A DNA stretch of 64,000 nucleotides, taken from positions 37,014,001-37,078,000 of the forward strand of contig OZ241831.1 in the NCBI GenBank assembly GCA_965202585.1, in the 5' to 3' direction. The DNA comes from Thalia democratica (Eukaryota). The position numbers were made by a program, and so were the translations under genes. The notes beneath the pieces are model-generated. The model was not told where the DNA came from. It searched no databases and saw only the letters and a program-made list of their open reading frames with translations. Numbering within the stretch: the stretch's first letter is position 1; every line of letters begins with the position of its first letter. Below, piece after piece: positions 6,753-53,929 of the stretch.

Positions 6753-6907
6753 TACTTACACTACCAATCGTTTTGTAGTAAGAAACGAAAAGTAAACCTA
6801 ATCAAAACGCTGTACCATAGAGCATACAGAATCTGTTCGAAAGAATTACTTCATTCAGAGGTTGAGAGAATAAAAGAAATCTTAATAAAAATGGTTACCC
6901 ACCAGAT

Positions 6908-12808: not shown

Positions 12809-13096
12809 NNNNNNNNNNNNNNNNNNNNNNNNNNNNNNNNNNNNNNNNNNNNNNNNNNNNNNNNNNNNNNNNNNNNNNNNNNNNNNNNNNNNNNNNNNNN
12901 NNNNNNNNNNNNNNNNNNNNNNNNNNNNNNNNNNNNNNNNNNNNNNNNNNNNNNNNNNNNNNNNNNNNNNNNNNNNNNNNNNNNNNNNNNNNNNNNNNNN
13001 NNNNNNNNNNNNNNNNNNNNNNNNNNNNNNNNNNNNNNNNNNNNNNNNNNNNNNNNNNNNNNNNNNNNNNNNNNNNNNNNNNNNNNNNNNNNNNNN
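12809..13096. other. Assembly gap (N run)
   Basis: 288 N bases. Confidence 1.
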
Positions 13097-31944: not shown

Positions 31945-34900
31945 TCAAAACCAACCTTGCTGAGCGATCTGACTTCCATAAAAGTTATTCGCAGATACCA
32001 TTGAGCTGTATGGATATACCGATGAGTGATTACTTCTTGATGTAGAAGAAGATAAATCTAAAACTCCTGGTTGAACTACAGAGTAAGGTTGTTGTTGATA
32101 ACCCGAAACATACTGCTGAATTTGTTGATTGTAGCTGCTAGGTGGCGCGTAAGAGGCCTGTTGGTAATTTTGGAACGACTGAGGATCGTAAACTGATGAG
32201 TTATTATATTGAGGATTGTAAACTTGGGGATTGTAAACTTGTGGGTTGTGGAAAGCCGATGGCTGAACAGGAGTAAAAGCCGATGGTGCTTGTGTATCCA
32301 TATTCTGTTTATAAAAACAAAAAGTATAACAAAATTTTATATATTTAAAGGTAAATTTATTTGAAACAATGTCTAATTTCTTAAATTTTTTTATAGACAA
32401 ATTTTTCGCTTGATTAAACTTATTTTTTCTACATCTCAACATAAAAAACAGTAGTAAAACAAGACAAAAAACCAATTCAAAGTTTTTTTTTATCTGTTAA
32501 CTATAAGCTAAATTAATAAATTACTGTAAAGCACTTTATAGTATGAAACCATTATTAACATTTTCATTATTAATATTAACATATTTTCTTTATTCTTTAA
32601 CCTTAAGTAAAATACTAGTTTTAAAAAATTTTAGATAGGAAATATATTTGATATCTTTTTTAAATTATTGCTTTAAAAACAGGACGAAAAATTCTAAATA
32701 TTTGTTTTTCAAGAATAATCAAAATTAGTTAAAACTTCTTATTCAAAGTAAGTATAGTTTAAAAACTAGTTGACTATTTTGAAAACAAAACTTGTAAATT
32801 TACTTAAACAAATAAAAAATTCACTTAAGTTTCTAAACTGAGTCAGGCTGTATTAGCTTATTTTAAAGTGTGTTTTAAATTAAAAATTATTTATAAAAAC
32901 ATTTCTAACTTGTGCTGTAAACCCATAAGAAGCTGTTTTCGATTTATCTTCAACTTTCGGAGCAAAATATGTGTTATTCCGTTGCTGATTGTAACTGGTA
33001 ATTGGGCTGCTATATTCTTTTGACAAGAAAATTTTTAATAATGTAAATAATTTTTTAAGAGTGTATATATTTTTGCAAATAGAAATTACTAGTTTAGTTA
33101 GTTTTAGAAAATGAAGATTTTTTGATTAACATAGACAAAGTTTATTGAATAACTAAAAATTACAGCGACAACAAAGTTTTAATATGTACAATTGTAAATA
33201 ATATTTTTTAATCAATTTTTACAAGATATTAAACTTATTTTAAACACTTAATTATAGGTAGCATACTTGACCTTTTATGTTTTAACTTCTTAGTTTTAAA
33301 GTATTTTAACACATGTTACTCTAATTTAAAATAAGCTTCAACTAATGTCTGAATAAACTATGAAACATTTTTGTTTATTTACACTAAACTAAAACTAAAT
33401 TGTTATTTTTAAAACCGTGTATTAATTATTACTGAAGTCAAAAATTAACAACTTTTCTAATTTGATTTTAGAAATTTCTATCAATCATGTTGATTTAAGT
33501 TATTAATCGTTATAAAAAATAATTATAGTTCTATTGACAGTCGTTTATATTGATTAAGGAGATTGAATTTAAATATTAAATAAGTTTAGCTGTAATTTAT
33601 AAAGGTTTTCTATAAAATACGTTTAATCTTTGCTTCTTTTAAACAAACTTATGGCATTTGTGATACATTTAATTCTTACTAAAACTTAAGTAAAACTTAA
33701 ATTGAAAGTAGGAACTATAAAAGATTTAGTACATTATATATGAAATCAATATAATGAACTAACTATATTACAACAAGTACAAAAGACTAACTGCTTTTTG
33801 GTCGTAAAATTTTAGGTAAGGTATGACTGTAAGACTGTGGTTGATCTAAAGTTGACATGGTAGCTGAAAAGTTAGGATAAGAATTTGCATCCGGAGTCAT
33901 TACTTGACCTGACATCTGAAAAGATTGCCTTCCTGAAAAGTTAGTTAAAGCCTGGTCTTGTAAATCCAGACTACTCAAAGTTGCAGGGTTTGAACTAAGT
34001 TGGGAAGAAGGATTTATTTGATCAAATTCATCTATATTGTCAGAATCACTTAAGAGAGAACTATTTCTTTTTTGGTAGTCTTTGTATAAAGGATTATTTG
34101 GGTTTAGTACGTTGCCTACTTTTTCACGCAAAATCCTGCTAACAGAAGAAACAGAGGGGACGTTGTGTAGATCACAAACTCCATCGGTGAGCAACCGGTC
34201 CCTAATTTCCCTCGCGAATATTGCAGGGTCTTCGACTTTGTAATCTGTTATCTTCTGTACGACTACAGGGGTCGTTTTTCTCGGCTTGCTGCCCCCAACT
34301 GTACCTGGAGCTATACTTCCAGTTTCGTTGAACCTTGATAATATCTTGCTGACGCAACCGTGGGACACCTTCAGTTTTCGACTGATATTGCAGGGCTGCA
34401 CGCCTTGTTTGTAGAGATCAACTATTTTCTCCCGAGTGTCGTGCGGTAGCGGACGGCCGTTGTAGAAAAGTCCCCCTAATTGATTCATTTCTGCATAGCC
34501 ATCAACTGTAAAAGAAGTTTACTAAATTTAAAGAATAAAGCATGAGTTACAGCGACTGAATATTAATTTCGATAATAGTAATGATTGCTAATAAATAATT
34601 TAATACAGTTCTATATCAATTTTTTAACAAAGCTGTGTTTGGTCTTAACCGCTTAAAAACCATTTATACTCAAGCATCTTTATAAATCATGTATATAGAT
34701 AAATTACTTTTTACATGAAAAACTTTAATCTTTTTCTCAAATGTAGCTTGAAACTTTCTATTGTTTCAAACTGACAATTGAATTGACAGCTGCATGTAGT
34801 TTAAACTACTAGAATTTTTATTAACTCGATACTTTTCACCTGTGAAAAATTCAACACTTTTTTTACAGCTTTTACAATGAAATCAACCGAAACGAAATAA

Positions 34901-35794
34901 ATCACCACTAAGTCATAGTGAAAACCTTATTGAATGATTTTTTAATTATTTATCTTTAAATTCTTTATTTTTATTAACTATCATGGACATAAAGGTTTTA
35001 TGAATTTATACAAGTGTTTGGTACTTCCAGTAAAAGTCTGACAATGGTTAAAAATAAAAAATATAACATGGCCAATACAATTTTTATGAAATTTTGATTT
35101 TAACTTTGAGTAATAAATATCTAAATAAGTAATATTAAAAATAAAATTCTACTATTAATCTGTTTTAATAATTTTGCTTGAAAAATATAATTTAAGGCAA
35201 CACTTATTCGTCTTTTAGTATTTAAAACAATCTTTTTAAATATGCTAATAAAGCATTCCCACTTTTAAATTTTAAGAATATAATTTATCTAATTTTATTG
35301 ACTTGGATTGAAAATTTATATTAAAGGCTAACTCAATTTTGAATAAAAAAGATGCAGTAATAATTTAGATAATCTATCTTTTTTTAAAGTTCTGCATTAA
35401 TCTTGTAAACTTTCTCAGAAAAAGTATCAATAATACCTTGTGAAGAAAAGGTTTTGTTACAATCTATAGCTTCTTAAAGAGCTATTTTTTTATTTTGTTA
35501 TTAAATTTAATTATTTTGTTATTGAATCTCTACTTACTTCTATAAGTTTATTTCGACGAATTAAAATAATTGAAAACTTAGTATTTAAATTTAGTTATTT
35601 TAGAGTTTACTATAAAAATAAAAAAATAAACACAAATTTATGCTTTTATCAATAATTTTAATTAACAACAATTTTTTAGATATTAATGACTTACTCTGAA
35701 TAAATAATTAAAGGTTTTTTTACTGTATATATACATATGGTAATTTATATTTATTTATACCTTTACCTCTTGTTACTGTGTTCCCCGTATTCAT
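31945..35794 (-). CDS. Paired-box (Pax) transcription factor, full paired domain, no homeodomain seen; about 402 aa (array copy 1)
   Basis: Exons complement(35767-35794, 33792-34505, 32910-33016, 31945-32304), all GT-AG with phases 1,1,0, total 1209 nt open. Reads [30 protein letters not shown]...[13 protein letters not shown]...GGSKPR...EIRDRLL..GVC...[12 protein letters not shown], followed by a Q/P/S/Y-rich tail with PGVLDLS. Confidence 0.88.
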
Positions 35795-36669
35795 TTTCTA
35801 CTTTGATATTCTGGATAACATTTATGACTAAAAACAGTTTTTTAAAGAATATGTTCCTAGTTTGTGAATGACTAAAATAATACTGTTTGTAATTTAATAA
35901 TAAAATCAAAATACAAAAGAAGTAATTACGAAATGAATTGTAGATCTGCTTTTCAATTTCGTTGTTAGAATACATCTGTTAATAATACTTTAAAACTAAA
36001 AAAAATGAGAAAAGCTTGGTTTAGACCTAAATAAATTTTAAGCTCATTTTTGTAACTAATTTAGCCTATTGTAAAAGCTTTTATATAGTGTGTTGCAAAC
36101 TGTTAAATTCAAAAAATAGTACATATAAAAAGCTTAAAAATTTAATTCTCTACTGTTTAAGTTCAAATTAAATTTCACTGTGCTTAACTCTAATACAAAA
36201 GTTATATAAAAACAAAATTATTATTTTAGATGTTAAACATTTGCAATGAAATTTTCTTTACAAAATTTCTTAGTTATGTCACGATGATTTTTCTGTAACT
36301 TTTGTTTTAATAATAATCACAGTGCAGCTCAATAAGAGATTTAACAGCTGAATATTAAAGCATTTAGCTTTATGAAGCATATGTATTAATTTTTTTTTGA
36401 ATTCAACAGTTTAATGGACAAAAGTCAGAATTTTCGATGCAACAGTAGAGATTAACATTAGTAATACAAAAACAATAACTAGTGTTCGGTTATTTTACTG
36501 TAGTTTCTACGCATTAAATACTTCATCAGAACAATAATAAAGTTAACAACAATTTGTTTTTTAGAATCACAACACACTTTAAGAGGAATATTAAATTTAT
36601 TATAGCTGCATATAAACACTCAAAACAAAAATTTTTAAGACAATAACAAAAAATTAAACTACATAAACC

Positions 36670-37060
36670 TTCGAGAAAACGTGCCACTGCAGGAAAGAAA
36701 ATGTTCTTTAGACAACAACTGCAAACAATATAATTTACCGAGCTACAGAAAATAAAAACAACATAAAAAAAATTTACGTGAGGTCAACCAGCACAATATT
36801 GAAAAATAGTTACAGTAACCATAAGGCAAGCTTTATTATTTAATTAAAAAGACATACAAGTGATATATCAAACTCAATTTGGGAACTAAAGGCACAGACA
36901 AAGATAACAGTTTAAATGGAAAATACTCAGCAGAACTTAAAGAAAACCACAAGTAACAAAACATGTAATTTATGTAGCCTAAAAAAGTACAAAAACAAAA
37001 ATTTGAAAAACGTAATCGTTAAATAAAAGGAAAGAAAGCAACCCTATCTCCACATAAAAA
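36670..37060 (+). mobile_element. Degenerate PLE GIY-YIG endonuclease remnant (Cys-rich type)
   Basis: Fragments CHCRKEN, IIYRAT, NHKASF, IWELK, LKWKIL and CNLC with many disruptions. Confidence 0.6.
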
Positions 37061-40000
37061 ATAATTATTTTAAAAGAACAAAATAATTTGGTCAAAAAAC
37101 AAAAAAAAAAACTAAAACTAAGAACTAACAAGAAAAAATCTAAGTTAATATGCTTTTAAGATTGTTAACTAAAACTATTCAAGTCAAACAGCTGTAAGGA
37201 GTTTAAGTTGCTTAAAATACCTTTTTATTTATTTGAAAACTTTTAACTTTTACCAAAAAAAATTAGCTCTTTATTTAAAACTTTTCATTTCAAACCATCC
37301 AAAACGGTGGTTGTCAAACGTCGTAATTCAACCCTTTAGTGAGAGATGAGTTGCCGTGCACAAAAAATACATGACGACGTTTAAATGAATCAAAAACAAA
37401 ATTTAAAATGCTAAACAATAAAAATTGCTAAAATTTATTGAAAATAACTTATAACATTGAAAAAGAATATCTTAACAATGGTATTTTTTTAAAAAGGGTT
37501 TTTTTTAATTAACCTATTGGTCATCTTTAAATCAGTTTTTAATAAACTTTTCAATAAACAAAAAAAAACACTTTGTAATAAATAGCTTTGTTGAAATTAG
37601 TTTAACTTTGCGAACTTTTAGTACCGTAACTTCACAAAAATGATAAATTATATACCATTGTTACAAATAAACGGTTTTCAGAATTAAAAGTAGTTTTATA
37701 TTTCTCATTTATTTATTTGTTATATTGTCTACAAATTGTATTTTTATCGACGGAATAAAGATAAAATGCAACTTTATAATACATTAAATTTCAATTTTTT
37801 AGTCTATTACAAGTATTTACTTATGGTTAAACTGCAAGTCTTTTATTGTGTTAATTCAGTTAAAACAACAATGTAATTGTTTTAGTTATACATTAGTAGC
37901 TAAGATTTTAGTAATTTAACCAAAAAAAAAACATTTCTTTTAGTTTCAAGTCTTTTAAAAAAGAAAATAATACTTTTTATTCAATTTTATTTACTAAAAA
38001 CTTAGTAACAGTTTAATATGAATGTTGAACCTTATCTTTTAAAAATTAAAACTAATTTAGTTAACAGCTGCTTTGGGTTTAAATACTTAAAATTTTTTTT
38101 TGAATTTTTTTTTTTTACTTTTAGAAAGTAAAAGACGTATTTGTTCTGTATTGAAAACTTTTGCTTTGAATCATCCAATCGAAGTTTGTGTATTTTTGTT
38201 ATTTAACCCTTTTAACGAGTGATGTATTGCTTCTTTATGTAGACAAAAAAAAACCATTTCACGGTTGAAATGCAGAAATTAAATTCTTTAATAAATCTTT
38301 TTAAATAAAGCATCGAATGTTAATTAAAGTAGCTTTAGTTATGGCAAAATGTTATGTATTGAACTTTTTCGATTACTTTCGTTTATCTCTGACAAATCTA
38401 TTCTTGTTTTAAATAATAGAGTTGTTTGTTAATCTAAAACTCTTTTTATTTGAATTCTAGCAAAACTATAAGGTTAAAACTTTTATAATGTTTAATGTCT
38501 AAAAAACGTTTTATATAAAGCATTTTAAAAAATATTCATACGCGATAATAAACAAATATGTTAAGAAACCTAGTGAAAAACAAAAACTATATACTTTTTT
38601 TTATCATTCAAACAATTAAAGTTGTTATTAATAAAGTCTAAGTAAAGGGTTCCTTGAAACTTTTATTTTTATATATACTACACGTATTTCAGAGCTGTAA
38701 TAAAACAATAACGTACTTATTTTAATACAAATAAAGTAGTTACAGCCTTAAAATGAAAAGAATTAAGCACTAGTTTTGTTTTCCTTTTTAATTATATGTT
38801 TAAAAAAAAGTTTTATCTTTAAAAAAAGATAAAAAGTCCATACCTATTTGGTTTGGTACCATGGACATCATAGTTCGATTCGTAGATGCGAGTTCTATAT
38901 TTTGTCCTTGTGTTGGAAACCGTTGAATTGCTTTTTCGCTTCCTCTTTCGTTTTCCAAATAAAAATTAAATTCAACTTAACTTGGCAGTTTATTCTGTAT
39001 TAAACGGATGTAGTAGCAAATAGTTGTTAAAAATAACGTGGCCCTAGTGAATACAACTAATCTAAATTCAATAGGAGTTTTTAAAAAAATTATGACAAAA
39101 TATGACAAAAGTTTTTTGATAAGGTTTACGACATTTTCATCAAAGTTGAAATTAAAAGTATTGTGTGTATTACTAGTTTATGTATCAAAAGATGATTAGA
39201 AACTAACTTAAATCAAATAACGATCACAAAAAGGTCTGAAATTAAAAATAAATCTTAAATTTAACTATCTTACTATGCTGCTTGATTTTGATGTAACAAA
39301 CATTTCATACTCAATTTTCAAATAGCTTTCTTTTTTTTCTTTTTTTTTTTTTGTTTTTTTCAAAGTTCCCTTTTTCAGTTCTCTCGATATAAGCTATAAG
39401 AAACGAAATAAGCTATGAACCATTAACTAAAATTTTTTTTAGCAATCTACTGGATCCATATCGGAAAAAATTTCCGGAACACGCCGGATCTTTATTTTAT
39501 TGGATAAATTAGATCACTAAAGATAATTTAAAAACATAAGAACAATAGTTATGTTTAATGGAGTTTTGAAGTTTACGCTAAATACTACAAAAAATGTTTG
39601 AAGATTATATCAGATAATACAGTAAAGTTACTGGAGAGATTCCGGAGTTTGAATTAAAGAATAAAATCAATAATTTTAGATGTATTTAAGGCTAATCTTG
39701 AAACATATAACAAATATAGGAAACAATCTAAGAATTTCATTGGTTCCATCTGGTACTTAATTTCAAAATTAGGATCCGGATCTTGTTTTAAAACTTTTAT
39801 CCGGCTTGATTAAGTCCCAGATTTTAGTTTGAAACTAGGATTTGGCCGGATATTTGTTTGATGGATCCGGTATATCACTAATGTTTAAAAATAGTGAGGC
39901 ATTTTTCTCCGAAAATCTACCTTTGTAAAGTTAAAATGCTTAAGTTATTTATGCTTTTCGTATTTTAAAAACGTTTATTGTTGAAATAGTTCAACTACTT

Positions 40001-40069
40001 TAAGTTAACATTACTTAAACTTTTAATTCGATTAGGAGCATCTTTAATATCGGTAGGTGTTATAAATGA

Positions 40070-40442
40070 ATGAAGGTACGAATTTTCACTAAGAAACTTT
40101 TGCACAAAAACACTGATGCACAAAATTTTTTTTTAAGTTTATAATTTTTTTTACCACTATTACCCGTAACCCTTACCCTTGGTCAGTTAAGTTTATTTCA
40201 TTTTTTTACTCTTGTGCAAAATCATTACTTCAGCAAAATTAAACTTTTGTGCAGAATAACCTGTGGTTCAAAATTGACCCATCATCCAAAAATGTTCCTT
40301 TCTGCAAAGTTGTCTTCTTTTAAAAGTGACCGTTCGTGCAAAAGTTACTTTTTGCGCAAAGTTATCTTGGTTCAAAAGTGACCCGTAGTGCTAAAGTTAC
40401 TCTTCGTAAATAAGTGTCTTTATACGAAACTAACCTGCCTTC
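40070..40442. mobile_element. Degenerate small element with GTGCAAAAGTGAC-type subrepeats (related to 51493-53890)
   Basis: TTTTGCAC motifs on the left, GTGCAAAA/CAAAAGTGACC motifs on the right, and a TAACCCTTACCC spacer. Confidence 0.5.
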
Positions 40443-40782
40443 CTTAAATATATGTAAAAATTAGATTATAATACATGAAAACATTTGTTTTAACACAATT
40501 TATCAGTTAAATAAGACTCAAACTATTTTAGTATAATCAGGATTTTTGTACATTGTTACTTGTTATGTTTAAATAGTTCAAAAGTGACCCGTAGTGCTAA
40601 AGTTACTCTTCGTAAATAAGTGTCTTTATACGAAACTAACCTGCCTTCCTTAAATATATGTAAAAAATTAGATTATAATACGTGAAAACATTTGTTTTAA
40701 CACAATTTATCAGTTAAATAAGACTCAAACTATTTTAGTATAATCAGGATTTTTGTACATTGTTACTTGTTATGTTTAAATA
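40370..40782. repeat. Near-perfect 206-207 bp direct tandem duplication
   Basis: GTTCAAAAGTGACCCGTAGTGC...GTTATGTTTAAATA occurs at 40370 and again at 40576. Confidence 0.95.
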
Positions 40783-40919
40783 AAAATAAACGTAGAAATT
40801 TTAGCAAAGAAAGCAATCTGAACATGTACATTAATAAAAACTGCATAAATTAAGCTATAGCTAATGCCTAATATTGATATAATTATAAAAAGCCATAATA
40901 CAAAACACAAAGATAAAAA

Positions 40920-41340
40920 GCTATATAAATATTGTAATACCAACTTAAAGGTGTAAACTGCATTTCATAACATATAAAAATATTGTTATGTTATGCTATT
41001 ATATTATATAAGATAATATACAAAGCATTAGTCAACACAAAATGAAACCAAAACATATACATAACAAACTTCTAGCCAAATAATAAAGACACTTCATCAC
41101 ATAACATAACAATCAAATGCAAACCTGAAAGTAAGAAGTAAAATTAATATGTCAATTCAACAGAACTTTCAAAGTTAATAGACACACAAAAGCTAGAGGC
41201 ATCAGACTATAAAAATTGAAAGTTTCTTAAAGATTAAACAGGCCTAAACCATGCAGGCTTTGCTTAAATGAAGCAAGTCTGATATTACAAGCAAATACTT
41301 ACTATATGAAAAATCAGAACTCATTAGAAGGAATTTCTGT
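40920..41340 (+). mobile_element. Degenerate PLE GIY-YIG remnant, duplicated with the segment (second copy about 45340-45730)
   Basis: Shared CATTAGTCAACACAAAA and AAACCTGAAAGTAA blocks. The 45340 copy gives degenerate PLKGENCKQ..VY fragments. Confidence 0.5.
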
Positions 41341-42255
41341 TGATTAATTAAAAAAAAAGCTAACAAAATGGATGTCTTTTACGGATGTTCTTGCTTAACA
41401 TAACTCTAGCTACTTAGTTAAAAACAAATTCTTTAACATATCAATTAAAAGCTAAATTATCAAGTATAAGCTTAAAAGTTTGACTTATAAAATTTTTAGA
41501 ATTATAAAATTGCATTTTTATGGGTTGAAAATTACTATTTTCATAAATTTCTGGCACTGTTTACAGTCATGAATTATAATTTTAAACTTTCTTGTTAAGC
41601 AGGTAATCACAAAAAAAAAACTTACTTCTTTTTACTTTTTTAGTTTTGAATCTTTTCAAGAAAGATTAAGAATAGTTTCTAGAATTAATTGAATATGTAC
41701 TTGTGATTTCTTAGATTAGTTTGAATATACGTCATGATTATTCTGGTTCTACCGTATTTTTATTTAGCAAAAACCATTTTAAACAAATACAAAACAACTA
41801 TGTAATTTATTAAATTTATCTAGAAAACTTTTAATAAAGATACGAAAAAAAAAGTATAAAATATAAACAAATTTAACATATGCTCAATACATAAAAAAAT
41901 GTTTTATTATATACTAAAACTTTATTGATTTAATAAATTTATAGCTTGGATCCATTTAACTCTAAATCATATGTCGAGATAACTTTTCAAACCAGTAAGC
42001 TTAACTCATTATTTAACAAACGGAAATGTGAGCTAAACAAACGAAAATAACTTATAATTTTAATTAACCATAAACGATACAATTTTAATGGTTAAACATT
42101 TTTGCTGCACTTTAAGCATTAACTCGTTGATGACTTTAAAAGTTTTTCGACAAATACAGCTTTAAAGTATCTTCTTTGCTGATTGATTTACTTTCGGCCT
42201 AAATCTCCGTTTCTTGCCACATTTGTTGACGATGCTGTTGATTGATCATTAACTT

Positions 42256-44033
42256 TTATACCAATAACTTGATGAGAAATAGAGAAGCAGTTAGAGTTGG
42301 CTGGTGTTCAACTTGAGCGGTTCGAAGTAGATCAGGTGGAAATTGAGCAGGTGGAACTTGATTGTGTTTAACATCAGGAAGTTGATTTTCAGGATGATGA
42401 AGTCGTGTAGGTGGATGTTGAGTACTTGGAAAACTAGTTGGTAAACTTTATCTAAAAATAGGACGACTTTTTGATGAGTTAACCGAAAAATCTAGAACTC
42501 CTGGTTGAAATTCAGGATGTGAAAGTGGATGTTGAGCAGGTTGTTTAGAATATGTTTGCTGTTGGTAACTTAAATCACTTTGAGTTGTTTCCCGCAGTCT
42601 TCCGCCTCCCTGTTTCCCTGGGGCGACATGTCCGGTTTTTTTGAACCTTGATGAGTTTTTACTGACTCCTCCGTCAGACACCTTGAGATTGTGGCTGATG
42701 TAAGAGGACCTCTGTTGCTATGTTGGAGGTGTTCGACTATTTTCTTTTGGGTATCGACCGGTAGAGGACGGCCGTTGTGATAAACTTCACCTAACTTGTT
42801 CACATCTCCATCGGTATTAACTAAAAAAAAGAACTTAAAGATTATCGCAGTTTATCTAATCATCTTTCATTCATAGGAGTTGTTGTTTTATATTTACAAC
42901 ATTAAATGCAATGGTTTAATAAATCTCATGGTATTCGTCTAATCTAGTTAAACTTTAAAAATGAATATTGTTATTATGTGTTAGCTTATGTATATAATTA
43001 AAAACAAGTTTCTCAGGAGATTTTTTTTCAATTTTAACAAAAATATTTTCATTAGTGGTTTAAGTCTTTACTTTGAATTTTAAATCAGTTTTAGTTTAAG
43101 TGAAACTTGCGAAAACTTTAAATATTTAAAATTTTAATAACTTGTTACTTTTTACCTTGAGAGTAATCAAACATTTTTTTGTGATTTTAATCATGAAAAC
43201 AACCGAAGCAAAGTCATACCTACTTCACAGTGCAAACTTAAATGACGTTTTTTTTTATTCTTTCAAATTAAAAATTCTGTATATCAAATTAAAATACATT
43301 TTGTTTAAGTACATTTATTTAAAGTTGAGCAATAAGCAAAAAAAAATCACAATACCTCTAAAGTTTTTGAAAAAAGTAAGGTTTATTGAACGCATAATTT
43401 AAATAACTTACTTACTATACATTAAATATTCGATAAATTAATACTTGAGTGATTTAAGTTTTAGTATGTACTAAGTAGTAAATTTAAGTTTTTAATTTAT
43501 AGAAAAGTATGTTTGTGTCTAAACATAAAAATTATTTTTTGTTCTTGCAATATAATTTAACAATATAACTGGTTGATAAAGTGGTTAAAGAGTAACCAGT
43601 CAATATCTAAAAAAATTATTTTTCTGCCTGTTTTTGATCAGTTTTGTGAGCAAGTATTAACTATTTGATAAAAATAAAAACTGAGTAGTTTTTAAATAAG
43701 TCATAACTTTTAAAACTCCTTTGTTTTATAAAATGCAAATTTCATAAGTACGTTTATCAAGTTTTTGACTTTAAAAAAGTTTATTAGCTAATGTAAACAC
43801 AAGAATTACCAAGATTTAACACATGAAAACAAATAAAATTTTTAATTCATCTTTATATTTTTATTGGGCAGAGTAGAAGAACAAACTTATTGCTTTTAAT
43901 GTATATTTTTACAGTTTCAAAAGAAATAAAATAAATCTACCTACTTCTATTATTAAAAAAAAATATTTATTAAATAATTATATATAGATGTATAACAATT
44001 TTTACCTTTCGATGCTTCATTCCCTGAACTCAT
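42256..44033 (-). pseudogene. Pax paralog (array copy 3): N-terminal (PAI) half of the paired domain fused to the Q-rich tail; frameshift and nonsense codon
   Basis: Exon 44006-44033 (MSSGNEASK) and acceptor at 42820. Reads VNKLGEVYHNGRPLPVDTQKKIVE, then a 2-nt (AG) insertion near 42710, then ISHNLKVSDGGVSKNSSRFKKTGHVAPGKQGGG joined directly to YQQQ...QPGVLDFS. TAA at 42448-42450 lies inside sequence homologous to copy 2 (TQHPPT..HPENQ..DVKHN). Confidence 0.85.
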
Positions 44034-46616
44034 TTTTTGCGTTTGATTTATTTAATCTACACATAACTTAAAACAGTTTATACAGCATATGTTTCTAATT
44101 TGTGTTTGACTAGATTGCTAACATTTGATGTTCAACATCAAATTTGAAAGATGATGAAACAAATCATTTCATCGAGCGTTTCGAAACAATTAGTTAAGTT
44201 TGTTAATAGCACCTCTTTAATTCAAACTACTGATGATTTCAAATTCAAAAAATTGTAATTTTAATTACTTTTTATGACAAGCAGTTTTTGCATTTGACTA
44301 ATTTTAAGTGTTGCAAAAAATCATAATTTTTATTTATATTGCTTTCAAAAAGGTATGAAAAAAGCTTTTTAGTGTAATAGAAACTAGTTTTTCTTCTATC
44401 AATATGCTTTAAACATTTAATTTATAAAAAAGAACACTTTTTTAACGAAATTTTTTTTTTTGGTTAACTAAACCAATTAATTGTTTATTGAAAGCTTATG
44501 ACGAAAAATGATTTAAAACGAAATTTGTTCTAATTTGAAATCGTAATTAACGCCTTAAATTTGAAATTTAGAGTTTATTTATTCTATATATACATTAAAA
44601 AGTTACATTTTCATTTTAATTGAATATCAAAATTATGTTTCATGTTTATTCAGAAAGTTTATCGACTATTTAATAAACATACTATGATATAGTTTACAAA
44701 CTTTTACAGTATCAAACTTCTACAAAAATTTCTTCGATGGAGTTTGATAACTGTCGTTTTAAAGTAGTTCAATATAAAAATTACACTGCTTTAGATATAT
44801 ATATATATAATGTTATTAAACGAATATGAGCTACCTAAATACTTTCAAATTAGTTAAAAATGCCTGGGGTTTTTATCTTATCTAACTGCTTGTTATTAAT
44901 GTAACAAACATTTCACACTAAATCTTCCATAAAGTTCTCTTGTTTTCTTTTCTTTTTCCGTTTTTTCTAAGATTCAATTTCCAGTTCTCTTGATATAAGC
45001 TTAAAAAACGGAGTTGGCTGCGTACTACTATTTTAAAATATTTTTGAATAGTCTACTGGACCCCTATCGGAAAAAATTATCTTGCTCCCGCAAGGTCCTT
45101 ATACTGTAGTATAAAGTAAACTACTAAAACTTAAATAAAATTTAAAAGTAAAAGTTTTAATTAAGTGGAATTTTGAAATTTACGCTGGATACTACGAGAA
45201 AAATTTTAAAGTTATATTAGCAATTATAAAAAATGTTTGACCCTTAATCTAAACAAGTACATCAACAGAAACAGCTTACAAATAAGCTATATAAATATGC
45301 CTTCTAATGAGATTATTAAAAAATACCATCACAGAAAACACCAGACGAATAATAAATACCCACTTAAAGGAGAAAACTGCAAACAGTTAAAATAGTATAC
45401 AATCATTAGTCAACACAAAAAATAAAACCGAAACATATATGACTAACTTTAAACCAAATTAACAAGAAACTTCCATTGCACAACACAACAATCAATAACA
45501 AACCTGAAAGTAAACTACAACTATTACGTCAATGCAACACATCTATCAAAATCAATATACACTAAAACTAGAATCAGATTAAACTCTAAGTTGAAGAATT
45601 CTTGAAGTTTTAATATTCCTTAACCATACAGACTTTGTTTATAAGAAGCACATCTAACACTACAAGTAAGCACTTACTGTAATAAAAATCAGCTTTCATA
45701 TGAAATTATGGACATAAGAATAAATTTATGTGGATGAAATGAAAACAAAGAAATAGCTAATTATATGGATATCTTTAACAGATGTTGAAGTGATGTGATA
45801 ACAGGAGATTACTACTTATATAAAAATTAATCTGTAGTGTAACAATTGATAACTTAATTAATTTAAATTCTTAGTTTATTATAATTGTAAGCTTTTCGGA
45901 TTGAAATGACTACTTTCTTAAATGAATGTAATTTTTGGCACGTCATAGTCTTGACTATACTTTTTTTTAAACTTTCTAGTAAGGTCTTTTAACAACAAAC
46001 CAGGATAAACAAATTAACAACTAGATAAACTTTTTTTAGTTAAGCAACAAAAATTGAATTTAGTTTCGAGTCAACTAAATATTTCTTATTTGTTAAATTC
46101 GGTTTTAATTTACGTCGTAATTATTTAGGTTCTACCGTATCATTACTTTAGCAAAATCATTTTGTATAAATGCAAAACAACAATGTAATTTATTTAATTT
46201 ATTTAGAAAACTGTTTATAAAGATAAGAAGATAAAGCAGTACATAACTTAAACAAATTTAACATATGCTCAATACGTATAAAAATGTTGGGCTTTTTTAT
46301 TACTAGTTTAATAAAAAATTAAGGTTATATCTTATACTAAATTAATTTTTAATGGTATGTTGGGATAACGTTTCAAACTAGTAAACTTAAATCAAAATAG
46401 AACAAACAGAAATGTGAGACAAACGAACGAAAACAATTTATAATTGAAATTAACTTTATACGACACTGTTTTTATGGTTGAACTTTTAAGCTTCACTTTA
46501 ACCATTACCTAGTTGATGATTTTGAAATAAATTCGACCAATTGAGCTTTATTGTTTCCTTTTTGCTGCTTCATTTTCGGTGTGGATCTTTGCCACATTTG
46601 CTGAAGATGGTGATGA

Positions 46617-49600
46617 TTAATCTATAACATTTATATCAGAACTAGACGAATGAGTTTGATTTGGCTTATGTATAACATGAGCAGGTGGAGTTTGAGCAGG
46701 AGAAACATGACCAGGTAGAACTTGAGCAGGTAGAGCTGGATTATGTTTAACATCAAGAGTTTGATTTTCAGGATGTTGAACCAGAGTAGGTGGATGTTGA
46801 GTATGTGGAAAATTAATAGATGAGCTTTGTATAAAATTAGGACGACTTCTTGATGACTTAGCAGATAAATCTAGTACTCCTGGTTGAATATCATGATATG
46901 GAGGTGGAAATTGAGCAAATTGATGTTGAGAAGATCTATGTTGAGCAGGTTGACATTGAAATTGAGCAGGTCGACGTTGAGCAAATTGATGCTGAGCAGA
47001 TCTATGTTGAACATGTTGAAATTGAGCAGGTCGACGTTGATCAAATTGATGTTTAGCAGATTGAAATTGAGCAGTTTGAAATGGAGCAGTTTGAAATGGA
47101 GCATTTTGAAATGGAGCAGTTTGAAATGGAGCATTTTGAAATGGAGCAGTTTGAAATGGAGCAGTTTGAAATGGAGCATTTTGAAAATGAGCAGATTGAA
47201 GTAGAGCAGATTGAAGTTGAGCAGAAAGATGTTTAGCAGGTTGAAATGGAGCATTTTGAAATTGAGCAGATTGAAGTTGAGCAGATTGAAGTTGAGCAGA
47301 TTGAAGTAGATAAGGTGGAAGTAGAGTAAGTAAGGTTTGTTGTTGGCAGTTTGAAGCATACTGTAGCATTTGTAGAAGTTGAGTGTAGTTGCTTGGTGGC
47401 ACAAGAGGATTTTGATTGTAATTTTGAAACAACTGAGGATTGTGAAGAGCTGGTAACTGATTTGAAGTAGATGGAGGTTGTTGTGTTGTCATCAACTGTA
47501 ATGTTCAAAAATAAAAATTACAAAGATTTTACTAGAGTTAAACCGTTACAATAAACAAATTTCTGTTAAATTTAAAATTTTAATTTAGAGTAAGTGAAAA
47601 AATACAGAGTAATGATTAATTTAGATAAAATCATTCTTATACTATTTTTTTAAAGATTTTACCTTTTAAAAAGTTTAGAAAAACGCTTTTTTTTTATTGA
47701 TATATTTATTTACTTAAAACTATTTTTGTCACCTTGATACTATAAAAATTTCATAGAAAAAAACAAAAAAAGTTTATTCAAATTGAAAATTTTAATAGAT
47801 TTCTTTACAACTCATTAGAAACCTAATAAGTGGATAACGTTTGGAAATCTGAAAATAACTATTTCATCTAACATTTTAATAGTTATGACTATATATTTTA
47901 TTTTTCATTTAAAATAAGTAAAACTGAGTTCTATTTATACTCGTTTTTCAATCACGATTTAAAACTAGTAAACTGTTTTGCTAGATGATTGTAGTAATAT
48001 TACAAGTAAATTAATTATTCAGACGTGCACTTTAGCTTATAGAAACAGTATTAACTTGCGACCCATAAAACCTTGTTTTCAGTAGATCCTCTCTATTTCG
48101 AGAAACGTTTGTGTTGTTCGGTTGCTGATTGTAACTGGTTGTTGGTCTGCTATAACCTAGGTAATTGAAGTTAATTTTTACTGTCTAAAATTCTGATAGT
48201 AACAGATTGTTACTTTTTCAGAAAAGTTTTTCAGAATACGTAGTTTAGACATAATACAACAGCATAAACAAATCTTATTGAATTGTAATTGTTTACAGTA
48301 AAAAAAATTTAAGTAAAAATAAATACATATTTTATTAAGTTTTTGAAAAATATTAAATAAAATACGTTTAAATATTTTACACTAACATTTTTTAAATATT
48401 TTAACATAATAACAATTAATAACTAAATTTTATAGAATGTGAACTCAACTACTTTTCTAAAAATATAGAATTTCTATTTATCATGTATACTTTATATTAC
48501 ATAATTTTAAGTAAATAGAATAAAACTTAAAATCCTGTATTAATAGTATAGTATGTTTAAGTTCATATTTTAAAACTGAATTGATATTTTTTCGAAAGGT
48601 AGCTAAAATGTTTCAGCTAAAACTAGTTTTTAAATTTTCATAAATAAAATAACAGTTAAAAACTTGCAAAATAATATATTTTTAATTTGTTCTATTTTAA
48701 TTTAAACAGTAGTTTTACTTAAGTAAATATAGAAAGACCTGAAGTTGTCCTAGTAGGTGAAATATTATGATCGGAGGTGGGAACCATTTGACCTGACTTC
48801 TGAGAAGATTTAATTTTTAATAAACCAGTCGAACTGACGTCATTCTCGTTCCGTTTATTATGTGCTAAACCTCTTGAAATTACCCGGTCTGGTCTTTGAT
48901 GGAAAGAAGGAGTCATGCTGTTTAACTCGGCAAAACTGTCAGGGTCACTTACTAGAGAACTATTTCTGTTTTTAAAGTGTTTGTTCACAGAATAATCAGT
49001 TTTCAACTCGTTGCCTGCTTTTACACGCAATAAATTGTCATTAGAATTTATAAATGGGACATTGTCATAAGCACCTTTACCAACCAACTGTTCCTTGTCC
49101 TTCTTAACTATTCCTTCTTTTATCTTCTGCATGACGCTTTGGTTCAAAACTCTCGGTTTGCTCTTTCCCACCTTCCCTGCAAGGATACCTCCGGTCTTTT
49201 TGTGTTTAGACAAGTAATTATCAGTGGTACCGCTGGATACATCGAGAGTTTTTCTGTTTTCAACCTCCGTCTTGCCTAGTTTGTTAAGCTCAACTGTCAT
49301 ATTTTGAGTTACTTCTGGTATTTTACGGCCCTTGTTAGAATCTCCACCAAGTTTTTTCACTTCTTTATCGGATTCAACTAAAATACCATATTTAGGTTAT
49401 TACAGTTTATCAAATAATCATTTCGGTCATACAGGTGATTGTTAAGTTAGATTCAAAAGTTAGTGTAACAATTGAATTAATGGTTTTCATTTAAAAAATA
49501 ACTAATAAGAAAAACTCGTAAATAAAAATATAAATTGTAGAAAATGCTGTTATGCTAATAACTTATGTAATTATCTATGAACAATTTTATAGACAGAAAT

Positions 49601-50558
49601 TTTCAACTTAATTATTATTCAATGGTATCTGGAGTCTTTCTGTATTTTTTATTTTTAATAATTGTGCTGTCAGCTGCATAAATTTAAAATACAAGAGCTT
49701 TTTACTACTTGATTCTTTTAACCTTTAGAATAATCAAAATTTCTTTTATGACTTTTATAATGATAACAAACGAAGAATATCCCTACCTACGTCATAGTTT
49801 GAACCTTATTGATTGACGTTTTATTTCATTCTTTAACATTTGAAATTGATACCTTAATACTAGTACATTGGTAAAAAGTTTGGCAATAGTCATAAGTAAA
49901 CATTTTCACAATGGTCTTTAAGGTTTTTAAAAAAGTAAGTTTTTTAAAAGCATAAATTAAAACCTCAATATTTATTATACATATTAAGCATTAAAGTGTT
50001 TTGTACTTAAAAGGAACTAAGTATTACTCTGTAATAACTAGCATGTTAAAAACTTTTTATTTAGAGAAACATTTGTTTGTGTCTAAATATTAAAAATAAA
50101 CTGTTCTCTTTTTACAAAATGATTCAACAATAAACTTGAATGATAAAGTTGTTGAAGAACAAACAGTCAAAATTTTAGAACCAATTTTCTGCAAGTTTCG
50201 GATCAATTTTGTGAGCAAGCATGAAATATTTGAGAAAAATAAAAACTGATAAAATTTTGGTTACAGTTAATTGTTTTTAAACTCATTGTTTTGCAAAGTA
50301 GCAATTTTAAACTTAATTCTTTCAAGTTAGTGACTACTTACTTCAAAAAATTTAATTAGCTAATGTAAACTTGAGAATTACTAAGGCTTAAAAAATGATA
50401 ATAACTAATTTTTTCTAATTTATCTTAATTTTTCTACATAGAAGATTAAAACATTAATTTTTCGCTTTTATTGTATAATTTTTAGTGCACAAAAAAATCA
50501 AAACGAAGCTACTTAATTCTAGTCTAATAAAAGAAATTTTTAAATTTATCAAGTTATT

Positions 50559-50592
<34 letters not shown>

Positions 50593-50627
50593 GTTTTACC
50601 TTTTGATGCTTCGTTCCCTGAACTCAT
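46617..50627 (-). CDS. Pax paralog (array copy 2): strongly diverged paired-like domain and Q-rich pentapeptide-repeat tail; about 548 aa if the 48739 donor is used
   Basis: Exons complement(50600-50627, 48739-49377, 48056-48156, 46617-47495) with the same phases as copy 1. VKKLGGDSNKGRKIP...VSSGTTDNYLSKHKKTGGILAGKVGKSKPR aligns to the paired domain. RNSSLVSD, the YS.P.TSYNQQ.NNT exon and PGVLDLS are shared with copy 1. The 48739 donor (GTCTTT) is weak; otherwise the frame stops at 48719. Confidence 0.72.
46900..47310 (-). repeat. Coding 15-bp tandem repeat (Q-[TNS]-A-[PQ]-[FL] pentapeptides)
   Basis: GAAATGGAGCAGTTT-type units. The minus frame reads QSAQL/QNAPF/QTAPF/RPAQF arrays. Confidence 0.92.
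50566..50592. repeat. (TA)n microsatellite at the start of intron 1 of Pax copy 2
   Basis: Directly visible TA run next to the donor at 50599. Confidence 0.9.
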
Positions 50628-51860
50628 TTTTTCATTTAAAAGTGTTAATTCTATATGATTTACAACAATTTATATAGCATAGCTTTCGAACTTGTGTTTG
50701 AATAGATTGTTAACATTTAATATTCAAAATTAAATTAAAAAAGTAGAACAAATCATTTTATTAAGTTTTCTGAAACAACTAGTTAAGTTCGTTAATAGTA
50801 TTTCTTTAATTCAAACCACTGATTAAAGCTTTAAAAATTAATTGTAATTTCAGTTTCTTTTTATGACAATCATTTTTTTTTGCAGTTAGTTAATATTAAA
50901 TGGTGGAAAAAACCATAACTTTTATTTTATATTGCTTTTAAAGCAGTTTTGAAAAAAATTTTTTACTAAAATTTTTACTTTATAAAAAAAAAGTTTATAC
51001 TGAAAATTATCTTATCTTTTATAAACAAATTAGTTTTTATTTTAACGCATAAAACTGAATAATCTAAAACGAAAATTGTTTAAATTCAGATAGTAATTAA
51101 AGCCTTACAATAAGAATTTAATTTTTTATTTTGAATATTAAGAATTTACATCTTCATTTGAGATAAATAAAAATAGTTTTAATTTAAGCCTTTTTATGTT
51201 ATTCAGATTTTTAAATAAAGTACAAAGCAACATTAAAATTAAACTACGGTTATACTTATCATAACTATAAGACACTAACTTTACTGACTTTTTATTCGAA
51301 TAAAGATGTACTGGACATATTATGTTTTTTTTACAGGTTAAATAAATAGTTACTATAAGTGATTAAAAAAACAAACTTAGTGCTTTTATTACATACTTTT
51401 CAATGCTAGCAAACATTCAGAATAATGTTACGTATTTTTAGTCTAAAAACAAAATAAAATGTATTTATTAAGTTATAACATATATGCTTTCTGGAAACGG
51501 GTCACTTTTGCACGGCGTCACTTTTGCTCGGTGACATTTTTACACGTCAAAACTTTTTCACGACGTTAGATTTGCATGGCGACATTTTTGTAAAGCGTCA
51601 CTTTTGCACTGCGTTATATTTTCACGGATAAACTTATGAACTGTATAAATTTTTAAATAATCAGTAAATTTTGAACGGAACCTCACTTTTGCACGCTTCT
51701 AATTTGTATTTTCTCATGTTGAAATTAAATTATTTTTTTGTCAATTTAAATAATATTCACTTTTAAACAAAAGTTATTTTGAATGAATAAAATTTGGTAG
51801 TTTTTTAATGAAATTTTAAAATAAAGTTTTTATAAATTTATTCTTTAAAGAATTAAATTT

Positions 51861-51897
51861 ACAAACTCAGTTTCGGTCAAAGACCACGTAAGTGCTC
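51861..51897 (-). ncRNA. Degenerate copy of the second hammerhead family (core destroyed)
   Basis: Minus strand reads AGCA-CUUACGU-GGUCUUUGACC-GAAAC-UGA-GUU-UGU. Stem II and GAAAC match 28451-28479, but the CUGANGA core is mutated. Confidence 0.55.
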
Positions 51898-53394
51898 AAA
51901 TAAAGTTCATAAAATAAAGTTTTTATTTGACCTTTTACGTAGAACAATACTTTAACGTACCACAATTCATTAATTTATATTTATAATCATAGTTTAAATA
52001 AACTAGATGAGCACACATTTTCTAATTTTAAATAAAAACAATTTTGTATACTTTATATAAAAACAATCTCAATGTCGTTAACTTTTAAACGGAAAGATAA
52101 AATTAATTTAGTAAGACTTTAAAACAAAAATCTTGAGTATTATTTTTTACTTATATTCTCTTGATGTTATAATTAGCATTATATAGTTGTTAAAAATGTT
52201 TTAAATTTATTTTAGTTTTAAACATATATTATATCAAATTAAAAAAGATTTAGTTAGTTTATGAAGTTTTAAGGTATTTCAAATTTTACTAGATATTTAT
52301 TAATTTTTATTTTTAAACTTAGCGTGACAATAAAAAAAGCAATAAAGTACCGCATTTTCATGATTACACTTGGATTATTTCATTACTATAATGTTGCATG
52401 ATCATGATAAGCCGATGAGAGAGTAACGTTTTGAAGTTTGAACTTATGTTCAAATAAAATATGCAATATTAGTCTTCAACCGCTGAAATATTCCAATAAT
52501 GAGGCTTGGCAGAATTCTTTTTTTTTCATCAGTCAGTTGAAATATGGAACAAGCTACCAAATAAATTAGCAAAATTTTAAAAAATTTCGATTAAAGTTAA
52601 GTTTTGTCTGAATTATATTTGTGTTAGTAAAATTAATTAGTGATTTTTATCAACCATTGATTTAATTTCAAAATTTAGCTTAGTTTATAGTTCAACTTTT
52701 CAGCAGAAACTTTACTCTATTAATAATGAGTCATTTTTCAATGTATTTAATGGTTATTCATCTGGCCAGGCTATTGTTAATGTCCTTGCAGCGTTAGGTG
52801 TTAATTTTTGTTTTTAGTCAATACAGTTAAATATTAAATGTCGATCGTTCTTACTTTAAAGCGTAAATAAGTATAAATTTCTGGTTAAAATTTTGCTTTT
52901 TATGTTAACCTATAAAATTTATATCAAATTGTTTTTTTATATTTGTTTTATTAAAAAAAACTATTTGTGTTTATTCTTTTTTTTTTATGTGTTTTTCAGT
53001 TTAAGTGGTCTAGGTTTTGGTGCCTAGGTCCATAATACGGACAATAAACTTGTAGACACATAGTAAAATATATAAAAAGGCATAGCTGTTGATTAATATA
53101 CTAAAGTTCAAAATAAACTAGAACAATTCACTTACTATTGAAGTATTTTTTTTATCCTAGTTTCTAAATAAATTAAAATTTTTGTCCCTGGTATGAGTCT
53201 TTTTTAAATAATTTTATTTTATACTTTCGTTAGTTTGTTTCAAACATAAACTTTTTCTGTTTAAGATTTTGAATCTTTCATTATTTTCTTTTAGTATAAG
53301 TATATTATAAAATTTTATTTTTCAGTTTCTTTTTATCTTACAGATTTGATACTAACTAAAAAATATCAACCAAAATGCAAAATTGATGTTCCGT

Positions 53395-53885
53395 GCAAAA
53401 AAGTCATCGTGCGAAAATTTCATCGTAATAATGTGACGTTGTGCATAAAGTATCGTTGTGCAACAATGCTACCGTAAAAGTTGACATCGTGAAAAATGTC
53501 GCTGTGCAAAAATTACCCTGCGTGCAAAAATGACCATGCGTGTAAAAAATTCTCCTGGTGCAAAAGTTAGGTCGTGCAAAAGTGTCCTGTCGAGCAAAAG
53601 TGACCGTCCGTGCAAAATAAACGCCGTGCAAAAGTGTCCCCTCGTGCAAATGTGACCCTCCGTGTAAAAGTGACGCAGTTCAAAAGTGTCATCTCGTGCT
53701 GAAGTGACGCTCGTGCAAAAGTGACGCCGTGCAAAAGTGTCCCCTCGTGCAAAAGTGACCCTGCGTGCAATAGTGACGCCGTGCGAAAGTGTCCCTTCGT
53801 GCAAAAGTGTCCCTTCGTGCAAAAGTGTCCCTTCGTGCAAAAGTGTCCCCTCGTGCTGAAGTGACGCTCGTGCAAAAGTGACACC
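53395..53885. repeat. About 15-16 bp tandem subrepeat array (right arm of the foldback element)
   Basis: Repeated CGTGCAAAAGTG(A/T)CC units; explains the four overlapping spurious ORFs. Confidence 0.92.
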
Positions 53886-53901
53886 CACCCATGCTTTCTA
53901 C

Positions 53902-53929
53902 ATCTTGATGTTTCGTTCCTTTAACAAAT
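53902..53929 (-). pseudogene. Relic fourth copy of the 28-nt Pax first coding exon
   Basis: Reads ATT TGT TAA AGG AAC GAA ACA TCA AGA T|gt, versus ATG AGT TCA GGG AAC GAA GCA TCA AAA G|gt in copy 2. The flank 53930-54500 aligns with 50630-51120 and 44035-44560. Confidence 0.65.

Follow-up and report, generated by a model that had tools for sequence, protein, structure and literature searches.

Birth-and-death evolution of a tandem Pax1/9 array in a pelagic tunicate, with one copy possibly neofunctionalised

Pharyngeal development in deuterostomes is regulated by Pax1/9, a gene that is near-universal and single-copy. The stretch of Thalia democratica DNA analysed here (64,000 nucleotides, referred to as the window) contains four head-to-tail copies on the minus strand, each with a promoter and a 28-nt first exon, and the question is which of these are still genes and which are remains. 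We label them A to D: A is intact, B freshly dead, D a stub and C an open reading frame with a heavily rewritten DNA-binding domain. All four stages of birth-and-death evolution are thus visible within one 22-kb stretch, and we read the array as a product of such evolution, one member of which possibly neofunctionalised.

The exon-1 copies align with starts at 35767 (A), 44006 (B), 50600 (C) and 53902 (D), all on the minus strand, which is where the first-pass annotation had placed its four short first coding exons. The pattern ATG...G/GTAAA is read in A (35767-35794), B (44006-44033) and C (50600-50627); in D (53902-53929) the ATG is gone, with the GT and the upstream TATAAACTGTT box kept. 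Promoter sequence is common to all four copies in the alignment. A phase-1 paired-box exon follows exon 1 in three of the four (A, B and C, each with Pfam PAX matches) and the tail motif QPGVLD(L/F)S persists in the same three, both as originally described; a tblastn search of the window revealed no paired-box relics beyond these. The large-scale layout is as follows:

39266-44633, minus strand: duplication unit B, collinear with unit C
44874-51174, minus strand: duplication unit C, collinear with unit B
53558-53882, no strand assigned: 17-18-nt satellite (GTGCAAAAGTGACGCYC), taking the place of the body of copy D

Units B and C share about 70% identity, and the duplicated flanks said to join the two middle copies were recovered as three pairs at 69-72% (41009-42538 with 45388-46917, 43132-44633 with 49700-51174, and 39266-39613 with 44874-45220). 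Blocks related to the satellite also occur at 51497-51614 and 40266-40416.

Tunicates are highly heterozygous, and the sequencing runs contain variants of the region that are 5-10% divergent at similar depth; both points would favour a false array made from collapsed or mis-joined haplotypes or paralogues. We nevertheless consider this explanation very improbable: identity between the copies is no more than about 70%, their lesions differ and their flanks are unique, exact matches to the window occur at several places in contigs of runs X1 and X2 (the lesion of C included), and A-type and C-type exons lie on separate Tara contigs with their own introns. The assembly is also backed by the independent Tara contigs L001, L004 and L010. 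Haplotype collapse, the artefact that the first-pass annotation had named as fatal to its own reading, is ruled out, since collapsed haplotypes could not differ in structure and share just 70% of their sequence as these copies do. Two other Tara contigs (L002 and L003) hold further rearranged related copies.

Copy A forms a complete gene model (31945-35794; four exons, 402 aa):

35767-35794, minus strand: A exon 1, 28 nt, ATG..G, phase 1
33792-34505, minus strand: A exon 2, full paired domain, tunicate post-domain motif, octapeptide YSHTLPKIL, donor A/GTTAGT
32910-33016, minus strand: A exon 3, FAPKVEDK motif, common to the full-length plankton Pax1/9 proteins P0015 and P0126
31945-32304, minus strand: A exon 4, Q/P/Y-rich tail with QPGVLDLS, stop at 31945-31947

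It keeps 72 of the 81 invariant Pax1/9 positions, and its paired-domain dN/dS is 0.13-0.33 against three Tara orthologues; judged by these ratios, A is under purifying selection.

The Pfam PAX profile (PF00292, cut-off 22 bits) matches A at 6.8e-56 over profile positions 5-125 and C at 2.2e-10 (41 bits) over positions 6-86 only, and it finds B as two out-of-frame fragments (3.8e-5 and 5.5e-3, 24 and 17 bits). Compared with the solved Pax8, Pax6 and Pax5 domains, A scores 2e-51 (178 bits with Pax8) and C 1e-8. The first-pass annotation had set the array in a frame of cnidarian PaxA-D genes and had proposed a paired-domain phylogeny with PaxA/B/C/D; our IQ-TREE phylogeny, built without cnidarian sequences, nests the paired domains of the window inside the tunicate Pax1/9 clade of Styela, Halocynthia, Clavelina and Ciona (support 97/98), although the branches of B and C are very long and their placement depends partly on their flanks. 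Pax1/9 including all window copies is split from the Pax5/Shaven (Pax2/5/8), Pax3-like and Pax6 rows at 100/99. Among the matches listed, the closest named relatives are Pax1/9 of Ciona, Clavelina, Styela and Halocynthia, and the best 240 include no cnidarian protein. A motif behind the paired domain, GNVL(H/N)PxNPL, is common to the window and the tunicate rows only, the octapeptide of A aligns to HSVTEILG of Ciona and HSVTDILG of vertebrates, and no homeodomain was found in exon 2 or the tail ORF of A, the exons scanned. The octapeptide survives as a relic (YTHAIDQSL) in the Tara copy of C and is absent from C in the window. A neighbouring hnRNP-like RRM gene carried no taxonomic signal. By sequence, then, the genes are of the Pax1/9 class of a pelagic tunicate and not cnidarian PaxA-D, and that part of the earlier interpretation is not borne out.

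Copy B still has a good start, followed by a ruined body:

44006-44033, minus strand: B exon 1, ATG and donor intact
42583-42820, minus strand: B paired-box remnant, PAI half only, with a 12-nt insertion and a frame-shifting net 10-nt deletion at about 42682 (ISR/VSD)
42283-42582, minus strand: B tail relic, joined to the PAI half through a deletion of about 2.2 kb relative to C

Lost with this deletion were the RED half, what remained of exon 2, exon 3 with introns 2 and 3 on either side of it, and the 5' portion of the tail; a premature TAA lies at 42448-42450. The copy had been called truncated; it is indeed damaged, but not by simple truncation, as it carries a frameshift and a stop as well as the 2.2-kb deletion. 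B is a pseudogene, and it probably died recently because its lesions are so few (one stop and one frameshift across about 177 codons). Its specific changes fall 4/7/11 on the three codon positions, biased to the third. An origin as processed (retro) pseudogene was rejected, given that intron 1 and the promoter are kept, the location is tandem and the gap is a genomic deletion with collinear flanks. Copy D is reduced further, and tblastn found no paired-box exon after its exon 1 in the window:

53896-54043, minus strand: D relic, solo promoter, 5'UTR and exon 1 (ATG lost), 75% identical to C 50594-50742

Copy C is the difficult case:

50600-50627, minus strand: C exon 1, identical in Tara copy L004
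48719-49377, minus strand: C exon 2, open, eroded paired box, 7 codons deleted in the RED half
48056-48156, minus strand: C exon 3, open, donor and acceptor kept
46617-47495, minus strand: C exon 4, 292-codon open tail with QPGVLDLS and a C-terminal extension common to B

No exon of C holds a stop or a frameshift, and all indels relative to A are in frame; exon 4 includes an in-frame 15-nt repeat (23 units, 46955-47305). Only 32 of the 81 invariant positions are kept. The claim that the exon structure persists is right insofar as A and C both have four exons, but the ancestral 3' end of exon 2 of C (octapeptide relic and G/GTTAGT donor), kept in L004 and L010, is lost in this genome at about 48742. 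The exon now ends with an in-frame TAA (48719-48721) adjoining GTAAAA, and its sole phase-compatible donor is a weak G/GTCTTT at 48739. This lesion is real, because run contigs are identical to the window, with no mismatch, across 48387-48765. Loose ends at 48687-48716 in the run data do not match the Tara allele. The allele found here is predicted to encode a tail-less protein of 228 aa or, via the weak donor, one of 548 aa.

Is C a gene at all? The simplest alternative is that only A is one, that B, C and D are plain untranscribed pseudogenes, and that the open frame of C reflects luck or a very recent loss of constraint. The loss of 49 of 81 invariant positions and the deletion in the RED half would fit this, yet a dN of about 0.57-0.61 between C and A needs a long time at the neutral rate, and open frames rarely survive that long: in simulations, a stop-free exon 2 (213 codons) has a chance of 0.012 at the B-C noncoding distance, and an open frame over all non-repeat exon codons of C (421) a chance below 1/20000. 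The missing exon-2 donor and octapeptide, the TAA at the exon end and a low-confidence AlphaFold model (mean pLDDT about 50, with 60-76 across the three PAI helices and an unfolded RED half) likewise suggest decay, but no indel event separates C from its Tara copy where 5 are expected (P=0.006).

The first-pass annotation had regarded dN/dS near 1 as the mark of plain pseudogenes, and here the outcome is split. Compared with L004, C looks neutral (0.87-0.98 overall, 1.0-1.2 behind the paired domain), as does the tail between B and C (1.34), and such ratios favour the pseudogene explanation. In the comparison of C with its 90%-identical Tara copy, however, the PAI half gives 0.28-0.33, over few sites (56-75 codons), and its divergence is 2.7% against 9.5% in noncoding sequence (p=2e-4); exon 2 as a whole diverges by 6.3% (p=0.014 against the same 9.5%). 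Relative to the intron of C, conservation of this N-terminal half is threefold higher, and together with the open frame and the lack of indels it opposes a plain pseudogene. We therefore regard decay of everything but A as unlikely, though it is the most serious competitor of our reading.

The timing is less clear-cut. C has 42 specific changes against 22 for B (p=0.017), spread evenly over codon positions (11/16/15), and its specific change of 0.25 per site about equals the whole B-C noncoding divergence of 0.23. Coding third positions are more diverged between B and C than the flanks, so gene conversion may have been part of the history of the two; if so, the timing on which the simulations rely would be blurred. 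A claim of positive selection on C was dropped, as the coding third positions also diverge more than the flanks. The protein collections searched yielded no spliced protein resembling C or A. The three runs that contain the sequence, mapped on 44701-50700, cover introns and intergenic sequence and show no intron-shaped joints over that range; these runs are thus DNA.

A role for impaired copies as cofactors of the intact gene, or as its dominant-negative modulators, is inapplicable to B and D, a frameshifted pseudogene and a relic that are unable to make such a protein. For C it might be argued that the protein would titrate partners by the common QPGVLDLS tail without binding Pax sites: the paired domain of C is remodelled, but its ORF, exon 3 and the tail motif are all retained, and the promoter sequence common to A, B, C and D makes co-expression conceivable. 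Nonetheless, with its donor lost in this genome the tail may no longer join exon 2, and the tail extension past the motif is neutral between B and C; this role appears rather improbable. The VLDLS of the motif also differs from what we take to be the canonical PxDLS site for CtBP.

Weighing these results, we think it likely that Pax1/9 was repeatedly duplicated in tandem, that A works, that B and D are dead, and that C is neofunctionalised or sub-functional rather than a long-dead pseudogene. The array would have been made through repeated duplication of a unit of about 5-6 kb (promoter, 28-nt exon 1, paired-box exon, small exon 3 and tail exon) in the AT-rich genome of a pelagic tunicate. A would be a working Pax1/9-type transcription factor gene, presumably expressed; B would have remained a gene through most of its existence and died recently, via frameshift, internal deletion and stop; and D would be a promoter/exon-1 stub whose body was swapped for satellite DNA. 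In C, a burst of amino-acid changes would have erased most canonical DNA-contact positions and broken the RED subdomain, while selection kept the entire reading frame open and the remodelled N-terminal (PAI) half is now conserved; having also lost the ancestral exon-2 donor, the allele found here may be on its way out. The array itself, its gene class, the lesions and the evolutionary statistics come straight from the analysis, while in this account we infer the expression of A and C, the binding target of C and the order of events. It is possible, though doubtful, that C and its Tara counterparts P0194 and P0329 represent an undescribed Pax1/9 derivative: a paired domain rewritten at or above the neutral rate in a burst that followed tandem duplication, with RED destroyed and PAI remodelled and then newly constrained, whose new DNA or partner specificity would act beside or against the canonical neighbour.

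The structural interpretation of the first-pass annotation is correct: this is a tandem array undergoing birth-and-death, and its members are intact, eroded but open, truncated or relic. At 22 kb the array is a compact natural experiment in which a deeply conserved DNA-binding domain is taken apart or put to new use. Expression of C would make it a rare paired domain that left the canonical contacts yet stays under selection, and C could then have a bearing on why pelagic tunicates have such an unusual pharynx and body plan; a silent C would leave the locus as an ordinary, well-preserved case of pseudogene decay.

Pax1/9 genes are defined by a paired domain and an octapeptide without homeodomain (PMC4488758). 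Those of Ciona intestinalis and Halocynthia roretzi, and the Pax-9-like genes of Clavelina and Styela, share with the window the post-domain motif GNVLHPNNPLNPNY, an octapeptide ending the same exon and the lack of a homeodomain. The window differs in having four tandem copies (no tandem Pax1/9 array of tunicates is reported in the literature searched), in an intact copy with 9 of the 81 invariant positions altered (for instance FAWEIRD to FAREIRD) and in an exon 1 of 9 residues in A. Linkage of Pax1/9 to slc25a21 is kept in Ciona and Botrylloides (PMC5882950); in a superficial look within the window, no carrier-like ORF was recognisable among the GC-rich ORFs outside the array. A scan of JGI metagenomes with exon 2 of A, for synteny in relatives, gave two unrelated 36% matches only.

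Salps of the species Thalia democratica possess in-paralogues of other regulators, two Rar and two Otx, which are expressed and known from transcriptomes (PMC12994792). The array resembles these as lineage-specific duplication of developmental transcription factors in pelagic tunicates, but it is known from DNA alone and most of its copies have decayed. Genes of the eyegone type, with a truncated paired domain, are mentioned for Drosophila, C. elegans, hemichordates and echinoderms in the part of the literature cited through PMC4488758. C would resemble them as a Pax-derived separate locus with one usable paired-domain subdomain. In proteins of the eyegone type it is the RED half that is kept, along with a homeodomain, whereas C is derived from Pax1/9, keeps a remodelled PAI half and the basic linker, has lost RED and has no homeodomain. 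A general parallel is the established birth-and-death model of tandem families, in which copies arise by duplication and are then retained, diverge, turn into pseudogenes or are deleted one by one, as in the present array; its usual cases are large families of the immune, olfactory or histone type, and it has rarely been described for a developmental regulator that is normally single-copy.

The first-pass annotation had placed four 28-nt first coding exons on the minus strand, and all of them were located at their positions (4/4). The window itself is AT-rich (~25% G+C) with a single N run (12809-13096). The exons belong to four tandem Pax1/9-class copies, A to D:

35767-35794, minus strand: copy A exon 1, 28 nt; the gene has four exons, with the others at 33792-34505, 32910-33016 and 31945-32304, all with GT-AG borders
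44006-44033, minus strand: copy B exon 1, 28 nt
50600-50627, minus strand: copy C exon 1, 28 nt
53902-53929, minus strand: copy D exon 1 relic, ATG lost

An alignment including ~150 nt upstream shows that the TATAAACTGTT box, the 5'UTR, the exon and the GT donor are common to all four copies. In copy D the ATG is gone and a 17-18-nt satellite (53558-53882) begins directly after. Self-comparison of the window places the duplication units B (39266-44633) and C (44874-51174) in collinear order, 69-72% identical, and copy D aligns to C at 75% identity in the promoter and exon 1; similarity of copy A to B and C is confined to the exons plus a small part of intron 1. When both the A and the C protein were used as tblastn queries, no extra paired-box fragments were found in the window. 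The satellite (GTGCAAAAGTGACGCYC) occurs at three sites within the array: adjoining relic D (53558-53882), upstream of C (51497-51614) and in the downstream region of B (40266-40416), where it lies beside a 207-bp tandem duplication (40370-40782, 99% identical). The satellite blocks and the duplication may have served as substrates for unequal exchange in building and trimming the array.

Among named relatives, Pax1/9 of Ciona, Clavelina, Styela and Halocynthia rank highest, and vertebrate Pax1 and Pax9 come next. In the IQ-TREE phylogeny Pax1/9 splits from the Pax5/Shaven, Pax3-like and Pax6 rows at 100/99, and the window copies and their plankton relatives form a clade with the four ascidian genera at 97/98. 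Outside the paired domain, copy A carries a motif, GNVL(H/N)PxNPL, that in our alignment is common to tunicates only. The cnidarian, PaxA-D frame in which the array was initially placed is contradicted by these ascidian relatives, the clade and the tunicate-only motif. The class is defined by a paired domain and an octapeptide, without a homeodomain (PMC4488758); in copy A the octapeptide YSHTLPKIL aligns to HSVTEILG.

Copy A encodes a predicted protein of 402 aa, with intron phases 1, 1 and 0. Its exon 2 holds a complete paired domain (Pfam PAX 6.8e-56; 178 bits against the solved Pax8), and exon 3 and the tail match the full-length plankton proteins P0015, P0126 and P0128. Of 81 positions invariant across 13 canonical Pax1/9 proteins, it retains 72. 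Against three Tara Oceans orthologues, dN/dS is 0.13-0.33 for the paired domain and 0.31-0.52 for exon 2; copy A is under constraint.

Copy B is a pseudogene: although exon 1 and intron 1 are retained, the paired box carries a 12-nt insertion and a net 10-nt deletion (frame shifted at ~42682), ~2.2 kb is deleted relative to C, such that paired-domain residue ~73 now abuts the end of the tail exon, and the tail is broken by a TAA (42448-42450). Because exon 1 and intron 1 are retained, an origin as a processed pseudogene was rejected. In the PAI (N-terminal) half of the paired domain, substitutions specific to B are scarce and skewed towards third codon positions (4/7/11), and a three-point estimate gives a dN of 0.13 and a dS of 0.65. 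Only one stop and one frameshift are seen in ~177 codons, against ~4 stops expected if the copy had been neutral since the B-C split; the death of copy B thus appears to be recent.

For copy C the signals conflict, as both decay and retention are seen. It has the four-exon layout of A with each exon open, and its paired box is still recognized (Pfam PAX 2.2e-10, profile positions 6-86 matched), but its score against solved Pax domains is 38 bits, the RED half is 7 residues shorter by deletion, and 32 of the 81 invariant positions are kept. C-specific substitutions outnumber B-specific ones (42 against 22, p=0.017) and are even across codon positions (11/16/15), with dN = dS = 0.43 on the C branch. 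Compared with L004, a Tara Oceans contig encoding protein P0194 (90% nucleotide identity), overall dN/dS is 0.87-0.98; the tail extension common to B and C is neutral, and the tail exon of C contains 23 in-frame copies of a 15-nt repeat. An AlphaFold model built with the family alignment predicts three PAI helices (pLDDT 60-76) and no folded RED half, at low overall confidence; the single-sequence model is poorer.

Nonetheless, the reading frame has been retained. No stop occurs in exon 2 ahead of its terminal TAA, in exon 3 or in the 292-codon tail, and every indel relative to A is in frame. Noncoding sequence of B and C has diverged with K ~0.27, and gaps open ~33 times per kb. In neutral simulations using local intron composition, stop-free survival of exon 2 has P=0.012 (at t=0.135), and the 421 non-repeat codons remained stop-free in 0 of 20000 simulated trials. 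Between C and L004, noncoding sequence differs at 9.5% and shows 12 indel events over 1505 nt, against 6.3% in exon 2 (p=0.014), which has none of the 5 indel events expected (P=0.006). Codons 1-75, covering the remodelled PAI half, differ at just 2.7% (p=2e-4; dN/dS 0.28-0.33). The same open C-type protein (226 aa) is also present in a second Tara sample at 99% identity. Our reading is that a burst of change came first and that the PAI half then came under a new constraint, and that copy C is probably a coding gene, now or until very recently.

In this genome the end of exon 2 of copy C has been altered. L004 and L010, another Tara Oceans contig, keep the ancestral end, with a relic of the octapeptide (YTHAIDQSL) together with the donor G/GTTAGT, as in A. 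The window sequence diverges from both at ~48742 and continues for seven codons up to a TAA abutting GTAAAA. Since contigs from two DNA sequencing runs, X1 and X2, equal the window exactly across 48387-48765, the lesion is not an assembly slip. The sole phase-compatible donor is a weak G/GTCTTT at 48739, giving a predicted product of 548 aa; without it, the sequence predicts either a tail-less protein of 228 aa or a young null allele. The runs with window-identical contigs also hold Tara-like exon-2 variants. Across 44701-50700, runs X1-X3 yield window-identical contigs and 5-10% different contigs at similar depth, with several variant letters equal to those of L004; either heterozygosity in the sample is very high or the sample is mixed.

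Related Tara Oceans contigs include L001, 98% identical to copy A, and others with exons at 73-87% identity; the occurrence of these exons in ocean metagenomes marks the organism as a planktonic tunicate. A scan of JGI metagenomes returned nothing related. L002 (ERR1726819 k127_1044928) has a B/C-type exon-2 start, C-type introns and a well conserved paired domain. Its positions 138-1193 form a continuous 351-codon ORF with two tandem paired boxes: the first is intact (DNA 87% identical to A exon 2), and the second, in frame, begins precisely with the exon-2 start sequence but misses the NETGS-to-RLLTDG stretch. Either two tandem copies have fused in frame in a related species, or the metagenome assembly joined them wrongly. 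L003 (P0011) is a further open, eroded copy keeping 49 of the 81 invariant positions. Taken together, L002 and L003 suggest that copy gain, fusion and decay are recurrent in the clade.

Several other elements were observed in the window. A ~600 bp block at 57876-58519 has 55-60% G+C (against 25% for the genome) and contains a 189-aa ATG ORF (57925-58494, minus strand) that gives no Pfam match; an intronless gene, a foreign insert and a repeat are all conceivable. At 59665-60369 lies a ~700 bp tandem array of a 31-nt unit (TCAAAATCCACCCGA doubled; ~22 copies, 84% match), of which one frame is open and encodes a PxQN/KST-rich repeat. An inverted repeat of ~990 bp (5145-6129 and 6753-7739, 96.6% identical), with ORFs weakly matching GIY-YIG, fits the Penelope-like element relic proposed previously. 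The 231-codon ORF at 2060-2755 (minus strand), with an RRM domain (PF00076, 3.1e-18) and a G/Y-rich tail, is an exon of an hnRNP A/B- or D-like gene.

Overall, the proposed birth-and-death reading of the array is supported, while the putative dominant-negative role suggested for impaired copies can apply to copy C only, which is the part of the locus most worth follow-up. No spliced A- or C-type protein was found in the protein collections searched, and the run searches returned no RNA run containing these sequences. In the literature searched, tandem Pax1/9 copies have not been reported for tunicates. Ascidians show Pax1/9-slc25a21 linkage (PMC5882950), in-paralogues of other regulators are known in salps (PMC12994792), and Pax loci with a truncated paired domain are known elsewhere (PMC4488758).
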